DNA of 64,000 nt. Source: Haliotis rufescens. Lineage: Eukaryota. Both the position numbers and the translations under genes were made by a program. This document shows, piece by piece, positions 1 through 56,400 of this stretch. Within the stretch, counting starts at the first letter, position 1; every line of letters starts with the position of its first letter. The notes below the pieces were generated by a model. That model was not told the origin of the DNA. It did not search any database and saw only the letters and a list, made by a program, of their open reading frames with translations. The stretch is taken from contig NW_025964361.1 in NCBI RefSeq assembly GCF_023055435.1, forward strand, positions 1,178,001 to 1,242,000. Reading direction: 5' to 3'.

Positions 1-485
1 TATGTTTCAGTTTATGGAAGACTGCGTGAATGCTGTTTCAGTTTATGGATGAACGCTATGTTTCAGTTTATGGATGACCTCGTGAAAGCTATGTTTCAGT
101 TTATGGATGACCGCATGAACGCTATCTTTCAGTTTATGGATGACCTCGTGAAAGCTCTGTTTCAGTTTATGGATGACCCAACGCTATGTTTCAGTTTATG
201 GATGACCACATGAACGCTATGTTTCAGTACAGGGATGACCATGTGAACGCTATGTTTCAGTTTATGGATGACCTCGTGAAAGCTATGTTTCAGTTTATGG
301 ATGACGGCGTGAGCGCTGTGTTTCAGTTTATGGATGACCTCGTGAAAGCTATGTTTCAGTTTATGGATGACGGCGTGAGCGCTATGTTTCAGTTTATGGA
401 TGACCTCGTGAAAGCTATGTTTCAGTTTATGGATGACCGTGTGAACGCTGTGTTTCAGTTCATGGATGACCGCGTGAACGCTATG
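1..485 (+). repeat. 33-bp tandem array spanning the splice acceptor of the TTC6-like exon (>=15 copies, runs off the window start)
   Basis: Unit gctatgtttcag|tttatggatgacc(t/g)cgtgaa(a/c); TTTCAG ends at 10,41,66,99,132,165,194,227,260,293,326,359,392,425,458. Confidence 0.97.
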
Positions 486-17400: not shown

Positions 17401-20400
17401 CTCTCAAACTTTGTAGCTGATGAAACATTAAATGAGATATTAATAATTGAATCGCTGGTGCCAGTGATTCACAGAAAGACATACCAAAAATATATACAGA
17501 TATTACAGATGGAAAAAGATTTAATATGTGATCTAGTTATGATACCTTGTTTGGTCATTGGGCTTTAGATGCTTGCTGTTTCAGTATCGGAATCTAGGGA
17601 CCATTTAACCATTGATTTGCAACATGAAAGTTTTTACCATGAACTCGTGACTTATTTTGAAACACAGTGATGCTATGCCAAAAGGCGAGGTATAAATGAC
17701 CCTGATGATGGACTTGTGAGGCTTACCTTAGGTACAGTCCATGCCTCCCACGGCATACATGACCCTGACGGTGGACTTGCAAGGCTTACCTTTGGTACAG
17801 TCCATGCCCCCAACGGCATACATGACCCTGACGGTGGACTTGCAAGGCTTACCTTTGGTACAGTCCATGCCACCCACGGCATACATGACCTCGACGGTGG
17901 ACTTGCAAGGCTTACCTTTGGTACAGTCCATGCCTCCCACGGCATACATGACCCTGACGGTGGACTTGCAAGGCTTACCTTTGGTACAGTCCATGCCTCC
18001 AACAGCATACATGACCCCGACGGTGGACTTGCAAGGCTTACCTTTGGTACAGTCCATGCCTCCAACAGCATACATGACCCCGACGGTGGACTTGCAAGGA
18101 TTACCTTTGGTACAGTCCATGCCTCCCACGGCATACATGACCCAGACGGTGGACTTGCAAGGCTTACCTTTGGTACAGTCCATGCCTCCCACGGCATACA
18201 TGACCCCGACGGTGGATTTGCGGGGCTTGGTGCGGGGGCTCTGGAAAGAGGACCTGCGCTCCGGGAGCAGATGGTACTTGAGGGCCTCCATGATCAGGGT
18301 CTGGCACTCCTTGTCATCCCGGAACAGTGGGTTCGTCTCCACACAGTCCGCAATGAACTGACAGAAAAAAAGCAACACATAGAGTCAAGCTTTATATACA
18401 GGAAGATTTAATGCCAGTATTAGCAACCTATGTAATGTCAAACCATTTACTTTAAATTCATGATCCATTTCGTCCTTATAAATGGGTAATATTGTGTTAT
18501 GTTTTGTTTATTCTTTTAAGATAAATAGATTTTTATCAAGGAAAGGAAACCTAAGACACACAACACAAAAAATTTCTAAATACCTTCCCGATAAAAAAAT
18601 AAAAATTATTGGGGATTATGTTACTTTCGTCTTACTAGATAGGAAACCAATACACAAACTGAATATATTTAAAAAATCAATGATGAGTGGGAGTTGTTTA
18701 TCATACAATAAAACACTGCAGGTAGAATAACCATGAGGGTGTGGCTCATCAACTGGGAACAACTCAATAGACAATTCCTTCTCAAAATAACGTCTTCCAA
18801 AAAAAGACATCACAAGTTGCAAGCTCATGTTTGAATCTCTAGATATGCATCATGACAACACACTCAATACCCACATACCCAAAACGAACTCTGCAGGACT
18901 TTGCTGCTATGCACATGACATATTCTACGTAATAGATACCACAACCCTAGGCAATTATTCCCTAATATTAGAAATATCGGCATTTTCTTTAATACGGTGA
19001 CAGTTATAAATTCCACTGGCAAAACTTGAGTCTTTCCCGGAGGCAGGTCTTTGTCAAATGTAATCAATACTAATCATAACCATTCTTGCCCATAACACCG
19101 ACTCCACACCCTAATCTCTCATCTATCTGGCTTCTCTCAATCTACTGATCATCCCTACAGCTTCAGGAGGAGTCCGGCAATCAATACTCCGCCAACGGAA
19201 GCCAGACGCTCATGTTCATCCATCCCTTCTAACCAAACGTTGTACTTCTCAGTTTTCACTTGTCAATAATTACTGCTTTCCGTTTCGTTACCCTCCATAC
19301 GAGACGCTCCTTCCCTTACAATACGAGCCACATCGGAGCATGCTTGATCTCAGAACATAACTTGCTTAATGTGGAGCATGGTTGTAATACTATCACCAAT
19401 TTACACTCAAATAACCTCCCAAACACGCAAAACCAAATCAGCCATGTTATCTCTTATGATTTTGGCACAACCAAAGCCAGAGTTTCACCACATTATTTCA
19501 GTCACGCTGATGGAATTTCCATTTCTATAATGACATGTATGGAAGTGTACGTCCTCCCCAAACAAAGTAAATCCGCACACAACCACATTAATTGTCGCCC
19601 TCCTTGGAGACCCACCGCTTGCTAATTCGGCAATTGCTGGCTATCCCAAGATGCTGTTAGTTTCCCCTCAATCAACAACCTGAACCAGATTGAGACATTA
19701 AGTAAGTCTTGACCCTAACATGGCAGGGTCAGTGTCACCAAAGAAGCATCTCCCAGACTGACAGGGTGACAAGTAGCTGTTAGGCATGTAGTGGTCAATA
19801 TCGCAGACAGCCACAACAGGGATGATGGGGAGAGTGAAGGGGTGTTAAGCCAATCAAGTGACTGAGGAAGGTTTTACGCCACATTATCATCACTGCAGCT
19901 TAAGATGGAGTTCCGGTTCCAGAAACTATATTGGTTTTGGAATCGAACCCTGATGTTTGGTATGATGAGACAAGCTGTGGCCTGTGAGTGAGTAGGGGTG
20001 ACTTCCACTTCATCAACATTTCAGCTTTAGACATGGAGATCAGATTTAAAAAGATTTTCTTTCGGTTTTGGAACTGACCCCAGGTCTTTGGCATTACTGA
20101 GTTGTAGAGTTTTACACCCATTGACAACATTTCAGCTTTGGACATCGAGATTTGGCTTCATGAACTGTATCAGATTCTGGACTGATCCCTGAGCTGACTT
20201 GCACCAATGATCTTAGCGCTATGACTACCTAAAGTCTTGCACCAGTGATCTTAGCGCTATGACTACCTAAAGTCTTGCACCAATGATCTTAGCGCTATGA
20301 CTACCTAAAGTCTTGCACCAATGATCTTAGCGCTATGACTACCTAAAGTCTTGCACCAATGATCTAAGCGCTATGACAACCTAAAGTCTATGTTACAGTC

Positions 20401-53400: not shown

Positions 53401-56400
53401 TGTTTATTTATGCAGTCAGCATTATTACACCTCTGCCACAGCAATCCTCATGGATCAGGTAAACCAGTGGTTGACATAATGAACAATGTCCTCAGGTCAT
53501 GATGACACAGTCAGCCAGAACAATGTCCTGATGACACATTCAGCCAGAATAATGTCCTGATGACACACAATCAGCCAGAACAATGTCCTCAGGTCATGAT
53601 GACACACAATCAGCCAGAACAATGTCCTGATGACACATTCAGCCAGAACAATGTCCTGATGACACATTCAGCCAGAATAATGTCCTGATGACACACAATC
53701 AGCCAGAACAATGTCCTCAGGGCATGATGACACACAATCAGCCAGAACAATGTCCTGATGACACATTCAGCCAGAATAATGTCCTCAGGGCATGATGACA
53801 CACAATGAGCCAGAACAATTTCCTGATGACACACAATCAGCCAGAACAATGTCCTGATGACACAATCAGCCAGAACAATGTCCTGATGACACATTCAGCC
53901 AGAATAATGTCCTCAGGGCATGATGACACACAATCAGCCAGAACAATGTCCTGATCACACAATCAGCCAGAATAATGTCCTCAGGGCATGATGACACACA
54001 ATCAGCCAGAACAATGTCCCGATGACACACAATCAGCCAGAACAATGTCCCGATGACACACAATCAGCCAGAACAATGTCCTGATGACACATTCAGCCAG
54101 AATAATGTCCTGATGACACATTCAGCCAGAATAATGTCCTCAGGTCATGATGACACACAATGAGCCAGAACAATTTCCTGATGACACAATCAGCCAGAAC
54201 AATGTCCTCAGGTCGTGATGACACATTCAGCCAGAACAATGTCCTCAGGGCATGATGACACACAATCAGCCAGAACAATGTCCCGATGACACACAATCAG
54301 CCAGAACAATGTCCTGATGACACATTCAGCCAGAATAATGTCCTCAGGTCATGATGACACACAATGAGCCAGAACAATTTCCTGATGACACAATCAGCCA
54401 GAACAATGTCCTCAGGTCATGATGACACACAATGAGCCAGAACAATTTCCTGATGACACATTCAGCCAGAATAATGTCCTCAGGTCATGATGACACACAA
54501 TGAGCCAGAACAATTTCCTGATGACACATTCAGCCAGAATAATGTCCTCAGGTCGTGATGACACAGTCAGCCAGAACAATGTTTTTAGGGGGTGATGACA
54601 CACAATCAGCCAGAACAATGTCCCAATGACACACAGTCAGCCAGAATAATGTCCTCAGGGCATGATGACACACAATCAGCCAGAACAATGTCCTCAGGGT
54701 ATGATGACACACAACCAGCCAGAACAATGTCCTCAGGGCATGATGACACACAACCAGCCAGAATAATGTCCTCAGGGCATGATGACACACAACCAGCCAG
54801 AACAATGTCCTCAGGGCATGATGACACACAATCAGCCAGAACAATGTCCTCAAGGTGTGATGACACACAATCAGCCAGAACAATGTCCTCAGGGCATGAT
54901 GACACACAATCAGCCAGAACAATGTCCTCAGGGCATGATGACACACAATCAGCCAGAACAATGTCCTCAGGGTATGATGACACACAATCAGCCAGAACAA
55001 TGTCCTCAGGGCATGATGACACACAACCAGCCAGAACAATGTCCTCAGGGCATGATGACACACAATCAGCCAGAACAATGTCCTCAAGGTGTGATGACAC
55101 ACAATCAGCCAGAACAATGTCCTCAGGGCATGATGACACACAATCAGCCAGAACAATGTCCTCAGGGCATGATGACACACAATCAGCCAGAACAATGTCC
55201 TCAGGGTATGATGACACACAATCAGCCAGAACAATGTCCTCAGGGCATGATGACACACAACCAGCCAGAATAATGTCCTCAGGGCATGATGACACACAAC
55301 CAGCCAGAACAATGTCCTCAGGGCATGATGACACACAACCAGCCAGAACAATGTCCTCAGGGCATGATGACACACAACCAGCCAGAACAATGTCCTCAGG
55401 GTATGATGACACACAACCAGCCAGAACAATGTCCTCAGGGCATGATGACACACAATCAGCCAGAACAATGTCCTCAAGGTGTGATGACACACAATCAGCC
55501 AGAACAATGTCCTCAGGGCATGATGACACACAACCAGCCAGAACAATGTCCTCAGGACATGATGACACACAACCAGCCAGAACAATGTCCTCAGGGCATG
55601 ATGACACACAATCAGCCAGAACAATGTCCTCAGGGCATGATGACACACAACCAGCCAGAACAATGTCCTCAAGGTGTGATGACACACAATCAGCCAGAAC
55701 AATGTCCTCAGGGTATGATGACACACAACCAGCCAGAACAATGTCCTCAGGGCATGATGACACACAATCAGCCAGAACAATGTCCTCAAGGTGTGATGAC
55801 ACACAATCAGCCAGAACAATGTCCTCAGGGCATGATGACACACAATCAGCCAGAACAATGTCCTCAGGGCATGATGACACACAATCAGCCAGAACAATGT
55901 CCTCAGGGCATGATGACACACAATCAGCCAGAACAATGTCCTCAGGGCATGATGACACACAATCAGCCAGAACAATGTCCTCAGGGCATGATGACACACA
56001 ACCAGCCAGAACAATGTCCTCAGGGCATGATGACACACAACCAGCCAGAACAATGTCCTCAGGGTATGATGACACACAACCAGCCAGAACAATGTCCTCA
56101 AGGTGTGATGACACACAATCAGCCAGAACAATGTCCTCCTGTCGTGATGACACACAACCAGCCAGAACAATGTCCTCAAGGTGTGATGACACACAATCAG
56201 CCACAATAATGTCCTTCTAATCCTCATTAGTCCTCACTGACTGCAAGCACATGTTATTGGGGACCTACTCAATGGTAATAAGTCATTACGTCAACGTAAG
56301 GCACCAAAGATTTAAATCTGAAAGGGAGCAATATTTGAAAAAACCTTCTGATGCAATAACTGATCAATAAATAAAAATAAAAACATATACGTAAAAGAGT

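Follow-up and report, generated by a model that had tools for sequence, protein, structure and literature searches.

A 33-bp mirage-type minisatellite across the 3' splice junction of a TTC6 exon

When the end of an intron and the start of the exon that follows it are repeated together in tandem, each repeat brings with it a potential acceptor, and it must be asked which of these the gene uses and what the others would do to its product. An exon of TTC6 raises this question in a 64,000-nucleotide window (G000:C583:1178001-1242000) taken from a 1.33-Gb genome, where an earlier note on the sequence had described a ladder of tandem acceptors just ahead of the exon and had proposed that some of them add a short peptide, in varying number, to the encoded TPR array. 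As the window opens inside the array, the upstream sequence was fetched (L004), and window coordinates equal L004 coordinates minus 9500. Array and exon positions given below for the window are on the forward strand.

The TTC6 junction and the anatomy of the array

The gene, which the earlier note had called TTC6-like, is collinear over 38 exons with Pinctada TTC6 (2075 aa): residues 3-2071 of that protein map by tblastn to 38 collinear segments between window positions -75954 and +2627. Identity to the Pinctada protein is 56-89% over 19 C-terminal exon segments and exceeds that to the Branchiostoma and Polypterus proteins, and a profile search over 1.84 billion representatives returned clusters named TTC6 from Polypterus, Heterodontus, Protopterus, Esox, Lingula, Pinctada and Branchiostoma, so that the identification as TTC6 stands. 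From these identities the genome is probably that of a mollusc, or at least of a lophotrochozoan. The array-bearing intron is in phase 0 and 1242 nt long, with the array forming its final 540 nt. It follows an exon at L004:8576-8715 that ends ...TNRGVIQQ (...cagcag) before gtgcgt, and it precedes an exon of 41 aa at 459-581 that starts FMDDRVNAMKDYQEAISLDP and encodes the second half of a TPR. This exon matches residues 1914-1954 of Pinctada TTC6 with 78% identity by tblastn, with no insertion at the junction, and orthologue alignment across the junction places the presumed authentic acceptor, tgtttcag, at 451-458 in the last copy of the repeat. Joining the upstream exon to acceptor 458 gives ...NRGVIQQ followed by FMDDRVNAMKDYQEAISLDP, a regular 34-residue TPR that is conserved as a single copy in all the orthologues. 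The first 27 nt of the exon are also the exonic part of the repeat unit, and the exon has near-invariant columns in the orthologue alignment. The exon's donor, gtcagt, is at 582-587, and tblastn with Pinctada TTC6 places the next exon at 844-921, the following one at 1442-1589 and the last mapped coding exon segment at 2506-2627. The earlier note had read an open reading frame from 186 to 605 at the array; that frame is indeed open, but the exon ends at 581 (cag/gtcagt) and not at 605, which is the stop of the reading frame and lies within the next intron.

Within the window, Tandem Repeats Finder (TRF) reports a 33-bp array at 50-485 with 13.3 copies, 86% matches and a score of 648, and with the upstream sequence added it reports the array at L004:9445-9985, equivalent to window -55 to 485, with 16.8 copies and a score of 725. 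TRF, the unit table and the alignment together assign positions 1-485 of the window to the minisatellite, which as a whole comprises about 17 units from -54 to 485 (L004:9446-9985) with matches of 83-86%. Each unit consists of the final 6 nt of the intron (tttcag) and the opening 27 nt of the TTC6 exon. A motif scan finds 16 acceptors, at -22, 10, 41, 66, 99, 132, 165, 194, 227, 260, 293, 326, 359, 392, 425 and 458, the leading unit at -54 having no acceptor ahead of it. The sequence 'tttcag' is common to 16/16 copies and at least 8 nt upstream are common to 13/16, and a TTC start is found in the last copy only, which continues into unique exon sequence.

The spacings between these acceptors are, in order, 32, 31, 25, 33, 33, 33 and 29 bp and then eight times 33 bp. 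The distal units, at 1-193 in the window (acceptors 10, 41, 66, 99, 132 and 165), are degenerate, and the frame is broken there by units of 31, 25 and 29 bp. The eight exact 33-bp units that follow, with acceptors 194-425, form an in-frame block at 194-458 that is free of stops. This block has a 66-bp higher-order pattern in which units of an LVK type alternate with units of a GVS or RVN type; there is no difference between the units at 260, 326 and 392 and hardly any between those at 293 and 359, these being recent 66-bp duplicates. One unit of the block is a variant that starts with TACAG in place of TTTAT (228-232, by motif scan), a change by which acceptor 260 loses its branch-site-like motif and a new out-of-frame AG appears 5 nt past acceptor 227. 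On most points of anatomy, then, the earlier description holds: its count of at least 15 tandem acceptors in a 33-bp unit is right for the window and rises to 16 with the upstream sequence, its unit of intron end plus exon start is borne out by the unit alignment (6 nt plus 27 nt), the motif scan agrees with its eight exact, stop-free proximal spacings and its out-of-frame distal spacings of 29, 25 and 31 bp, the alternation of LVK and GVS over 260-425 is seen in the unit alignment, and the TTC codon does mark the last copy alone.

Origin of the array and its known relatives

Fifteen instances of a 21-nt core of the unit are found at the locus, far more than chance would give, and the core has no other true match in the 1.33-Gb genome; elsewhere there are three unrelated matches with 2 mismatches, against 4 matches for a reversed control. 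Since the unit core is unique to the locus, the array has arisen by local amplification and is not a dispersed repeat. An origin from a dispersed repeat or a transposon was rejected on the same grounds, the stray matches being about as many as for the reversed control. The locus is present once in the assembly.

Relatives of the gene carry the repeated segment once. The FM.D..NAM segment is single-copy in 24/24 orthologue sequences that contain the motif, with the upstream exon leading directly into it, and the orthologue fragments have a one-copy arrangement, some with an intron at this point (ORF ...FQ/FM.D) and others without. The comparison of orthologous introns that the earlier note had proposed gave the same picture, with a single acceptor and no array in the orthologous introns of 275-440 nt on contigs JAAUXW010295241.1 and RCNA010070801.1, and with the intron missing entirely from a third contig, JAAUXV010123304.1. 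Given the single-copy state of the relatives, the expansion is lineage-specific and 458 is the ancestral acceptor. To judge from the same sequences, intron presence varies around exon 459-581: the phase-0 intron before FM.D is found in this genome and in several relatives, others read through it as ...VNQFMQD... (L052), and in L051 it is the following intron, after ...FKQ, that is missing instead. Boundary duplications at this exon also seem to occur in other species, with one orthologue fragment (P0015) duplicating the exon end and the first part of the intron that follows, so that LAYFNAANVYFHTR.FNQVG... is present twice, and another (P0002) having, 23 residues before the real '...FQFMQD', a second '...LQFMQD'.

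The array is a mirage-type minisatellite, that is, a tandem duplication of an intron-exon boundary, of a kind already described in amphioxus. Its units are arranged head to tail, each contains both intron and exon, and the edge unit joins the unique exon sequence at 486-581. Amphioxus mirages have been reported in Adh3, troponin C, the globins BflGb6 and BflGb9, and PGBD5 (PMC3087553; PMC3902484), and like them the TTC6 array spans the boundary, repeats the splice site and has the authentic copy at its edge. The closest in layout is BflGb6, an acceptor-side mirage with 3-6 copies of 150-160-bp units (PMC3087553; PMC3902484), in which, as here, the unit combines the 3' end of an intron with the 5' part of an exon; the TTC6 array differs in its shorter unit (33 bp) and its greater number of copies (17). 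Edge units are left out of homogenisation in the amphioxus mirages, and these mirages have been reported from RT-PCR to be harmless to regular splicing (PMC3087553; PMC3902484). Length instability and undisturbed splicing have been demonstrated for the amphioxus mirages, whereas the TTC6 array is known from its sequence in one assembly, and its host is no lancelet, the best matches being molluscan. In the searchable literature we found no report of such arrays from a mollusc, and no acceptor-side case outside amphioxus.

Minisatellites whose first unit lies over an exon-intron boundary are also known from human donors, in F7 IVS7 (37 bp), IFI6/6-16, CBS IVS13, LMNB2 and PDGF (PMC1557585). In F7 the exon-proximal donor alone is used among 5-9 identical ones; in IFI6 the authentic donor is followed by 25 pseudo-donors, of which the nearest two are used along with it, and CBS likewise uses its authentic donor and two nearest pseudo-sites (PMC1557585). 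The TTC6 array resembles those of F7, IFI6 and CBS in that near-identical sites are repeated and the edge unit of the minisatellite holds the real junction; such arrays are natural models for the choice between splice sites. It is the mirror image of F7 and IFI6, where the first monomer spans the donor, since here the last monomer spans the acceptor, and in contrast to the human donor arrays each of its copies must also supply a branch site and a pyrimidine tract. NAGNAG acceptors are a further, more distant, point of comparison, in which two AGs 3 nt apart have one branch site and one pyrimidine tract in common. Nearby alternative AGs could add or remove whole codons in both cases, but the AGs of the array are 25-33 nt apart, have candidate branch sites of their own and originate from a minisatellite, which places the array outside the NAGNAG class.

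Acceptor choice and its consequences

Acceptor 458 has, as the earlier note had stated, no separate polypyrimidine tract or branch region: only repeat sequence is present for 540 nt upstream, and the branch site and pyrimidine tract must therefore come from the repeat. A yTnAy motif is found 21-29 nt before every acceptor but 260, in the form of the TTTAT that copies the first codons of the exon. For acceptor 458 the motif scan gives a candidate branch site TTTAT at 426-430, with the branch A at 429, 29 nt upstream of G458, and the interval 429-456 is free of AG; acceptors 293-425, by comparison, each have an extra AG (AAAG or GAG) 11-13 nt upstream. Pyrimidine content ahead of the array acceptors is 0.53, and the 19 examined acceptors of the gene span 0.41-0.94. 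With their shared sequence from -8 to -1 and their typical pyrimidine content, the upstream copies are intrinsically credible acceptors. Masking of these copies by RNA structure was rejected, the array RNA being less structured than shuffled controls (z = +2.5). Just before the array, at L004:9418-9422, is a consensus CTAAC, 57 nt ahead of acceptor -22 and about 30 nt from the expected site of a single ancestral acceptor, and we infer this to be the ancestral branch site.

The frame computation agrees with what the earlier note had foreseen for each acceptor. With acceptors 194-425 the transcript would be longer by 33 to 264 nt, with the frame kept and no stop, equivalent to one to eight 11-residue units, and acceptors -22 to 165 (7/16) run into a stop within 11-48 codons.

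We consider it probable that the array is a near-neutral mirage-type minisatellite in which the exon-proximal acceptor, 458, does the work and draws its branch site from the preceding unit. A founder segment of 33 bp would have happened to span the 3' splice junction and would then have been duplicated; slippage or unequal exchange, in part through 66-bp dimers, would have brought it to about 17 units. Copies would accumulate on the intron side and leave the gene intact while acceptor 458 is chosen. Exon definition could make this choice, the last AG pairing with donor 582 across the 123-nt exon, and purine-rich exon sequence, which adjoins the last copy only, may aid it; the branch site would be supplied 29 nt upstream, by TTTAT in the preceding unit. 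The 15 upstream acceptors would be intronic decoys in neutral drift, of which 425 or 392 might occasionally be used, adding 11 or 22 residues, and distal ones would yield stop-containing transcripts whose removal by nonsense-mediated decay is expected.

Several lines of evidence agree with this near-neutral reading. The array is real and its unit is confined to the locus, the orthologues are single-copy with one acceptor in their introns, and the Pinctada alignment runs directly into 459-581. The copies carry neutral variants in which conserved residues are replaced, and the AG-free interval ahead of 458 sets this acceptor apart from acceptors 293-425. Sister arrays in TTC6 have units of 73 and 86 bp, extra copies of which would shift the frame; the gene is intact, and therefore the authentic acceptor is preferred there. 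The amphioxus mirages and the F7 and IFI6 donor arrays are precedents (PMC3087553; PMC3902484; PMC1557585). On the other side, nothing intrinsic disqualifies the upstream acceptors, which have the same -8 to -1 sequence and the same pyrimidine content, nor are the copies hidden by folding, and the strong CTAAC motif before the array could drive use of the first acceptor.

The first alternative is the one favoured in the earlier note, that several of the acceptors from 194 to 425 are used to an appreciable extent and place 1-8 extra 11-residue units inside the TPR, the number of which might vary between alleles. The eight exact 33-bp spacings and a frame open over 194-581 are what such use would predict, the acceptors match the authentic ones of the gene and are not masked by RNA structure, and IFI6 and CBS each use two pseudo-donors, in IFI6 constitutively (PMC1557585). 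We regard it nonetheless as unlikely, in the first place from the substitutions in the block. Of the 11 distinct variants in the eight in-frame units, 9 are non-synonymous and 2 are synonymous, which matches the neutral expectation of 15% synonymous changes, and 7/11 lie at CpG sites. Residues conserved across phyla (RVN, FM) have become LVK, GVS, HMN and YR in the copies. Judged by these changes, the in-frame copies evolve neutrally, with no constraint at the level of the protein. The stop-free frame was considered as a sign of selection and rejected, because a single change could turn only a few of the unit's codons into a stop and the substitutions are neutral. In addition, unit 227 has a competing out-of-frame AG and its branch motif is gone, no orthologue has an insertion here, a word search gave no repeated FMDD units in any protein of 76-243 aa, and the sister arrays, with units of 73 and 86 bp, are out of frame.

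The spacing itself carries less weight than the earlier note had given it. Indel-bearing units number 0/8 in the proximal block and 4/7 in the distal region, with a naive one-sided p = 0.026 that is confounded, since 3/4 of the indel units are at the degenerate outer edge and the proximal block contains recent 66-bp duplicates. The contrast could reflect selection on the frame, implying some use of upstream acceptors, and to that extent counts against the near-neutral reading. However, exact 33-bp proximal spacing is weak evidence for frame selection, as 66-bp duplication and degenerate edges explain it equally, the recent duplication accounting for exact spacing without selection. A preference for unit lengths that are multiples of three, which the earlier note had expected of such arrays, did not appear: the six arrays verified in this analysis have units of 33, 45/23, 63, 73, 83 and 86 bp, at most 3/6 of them multiples, where the chance rate is one third (p = 0.32).

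A second alternative would give the ladder a regulatory role, with its distal acceptors, or all of them, binding U2AF and U2 unproductively or yielding stop-containing transcripts, and TTC6 output lowered in consequence, whether by slower splicing, by retention of the intron or by nonsense-mediated decay. There is material for such dampening in the 16 equivalent U2AF-type sites within 540 nt, in the 7/16 acceptors that lead to early stops and in the CTAAC 57 nt before acceptor -22. Both the unproductive binding and the lowering of output nevertheless seem improbable to us, as degeneracy is greatest in the distal units, where the edges of an unselected array would be expected to show it, and the occurrence of comparable arrays across unrelated genes suggests a mutational by-product rather than regulation specific to this gene. 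Very improbable is a constitutive coding role, in which acceptor 194 (or 227) is the real one and a fixed 88-residue insertion results: the frame open over 194-581 would allow it, but the substitutions are neutral, orthologues have no insertion and acceptor 194 is no different from its neighbours. Tandem arrays are error-prone in assembly, but a wrong number or order of units is hardly credible here, since distinct variants and indels, in order along the array, set the units apart from one another, there are no N runs, and several comparable arrays lie nearby.

Boundary-spanning arrays in TTC6 and other genes

TRF was run over 163.5 kb around TTC6 and the arrays were crossed with the mapped exons. 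Tandem arrays make up 18% of the gene. Of the 27 arrays, 4 include an acceptor and none a donor. Beside the 33-bp array, these are an acceptor-spanning array of 6.3 copies of an 86-bp unit with 97% identity at window -28847 to -28307 (G000:C583), an acceptor-spanning array of 29 copies of a 45-bp unit at window -25218 to -23903 (G000:C583), which decays to 23-bp subunits that each end in 'gttacag' and 2-4 exon bases, and an acceptor-spanning array of about 16 copies of a 73-bp unit at window -11377 to -8952 (L005:8123-8751 and L004:17-548). The 73-bp unit consists of about 29 nt of intron end and 44 nt of exon start, its copies are 96-98% identical, and the array is in two blocks parted by a 1.27-kb AT-rich insertion. 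Across the three sister arrays copy identity is 91-98%. A tRNA-like sequence, probably a tRNA-derived SINE, is found at L005:7826-7900, in the TTC6 intron just past exon L005:7675-7785.

Under a null with the founder unit placed randomly within the gene, the chance of an acceptor being the sum of unit periods times acceptor density, 0.5-0.85 acceptor-containing arrays are expected, so that P(>=4) is 0.001-0.011, or, with the flagged 33-bp array left out, P(>=3) is 0.011-0.052. The excess of acceptors among the arrays of TTC6, coming from one gene, is suggestive. Arrays also tend to abut acceptors without including them. Several further arrays in TTC6 end no more than 35 nt upstream of an acceptor. 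Among repeats placed in this way are a (GAT)n microsatellite of 221 bp at 1205-1425, which stops 16 nt short of the acceptor for exon 1442-1589, a 13-bp repeat of 2.5 copies at 790-822, which ends 21 nt ahead of acceptor 843, and a 13-bp array of 86 copies at window -65727 to -64631, which ends 33 nt before another TTC6 exon.

These observations bear on what the locus may mean. We think two linked propositions doubtful, namely that minisatellites of this genome have a bias, in their origin or their persistence, towards 3' splice junctions and that the in-frame ladder is used, giving TTC6 proteins of lengths set by the variable repeat. If the acceptor preference is true, it would point to mutation that is linked with the acceptor sequence or with splicing itself, and would extend 'mirages' beyond the cephalochordates. 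If the last acceptor alone is used, the array is an ordinary by-product of a minisatellite-rich genome. Together with its sister arrays, it shows that boundary-spanning minisatellites, so far known mainly from amphioxus, occur in another animal lineage and are tolerated in a conserved gene, and the array may be an instance of a genome-wide tendency in a non-chordate animal. Its 16 near-identical natural 3' splice sites with candidate branch sites are a ready-made experiment in acceptor competition, one that sets exon definition apart from intron definition, and scanning from an effect of position. As such the TTC6 array matches, on the acceptor side, the array of human F7 donors from which a case for oriented scanning was made, and it has a built-in read-out, as the proximal block would add codons and the distal block would lead to nonsense-mediated decay.

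Arrays that span a donor were found in two other genes. Window positions 17692-18228, on the reverse strand, hold 8.5 copies of a 63-bp unit that includes the end of a Kelch-family exon and its donor 'gtaagcc'; the Kelch-family gene is 17 kb downstream of the TTC6 array, and its frame is open through the 63-bp units. The second was found in the myosin-head family, which had been picked beforehand regardless of repeats and in which 1/6 arrays near exons is donor-spanning: 5 copies of an 83-bp unit at L038:1130-1545 (G000:C113, about 17.0037 Mb), on the reverse strand, repeat the donor 'gtcagt' and the last 17-20 bases of an exon ending ...DDECNFPQ. Elsewhere on the same contig, at G000:C113:13.93-14.29 Mb, about 15 tandem myosin heavy-chain copies on both strands are nearly free of minisatellites, as against 18% in TTC6. 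The biggest array in the window, at 53496-56215, has a 39-bp unit in about 73 copies and is 2.7 kb long.
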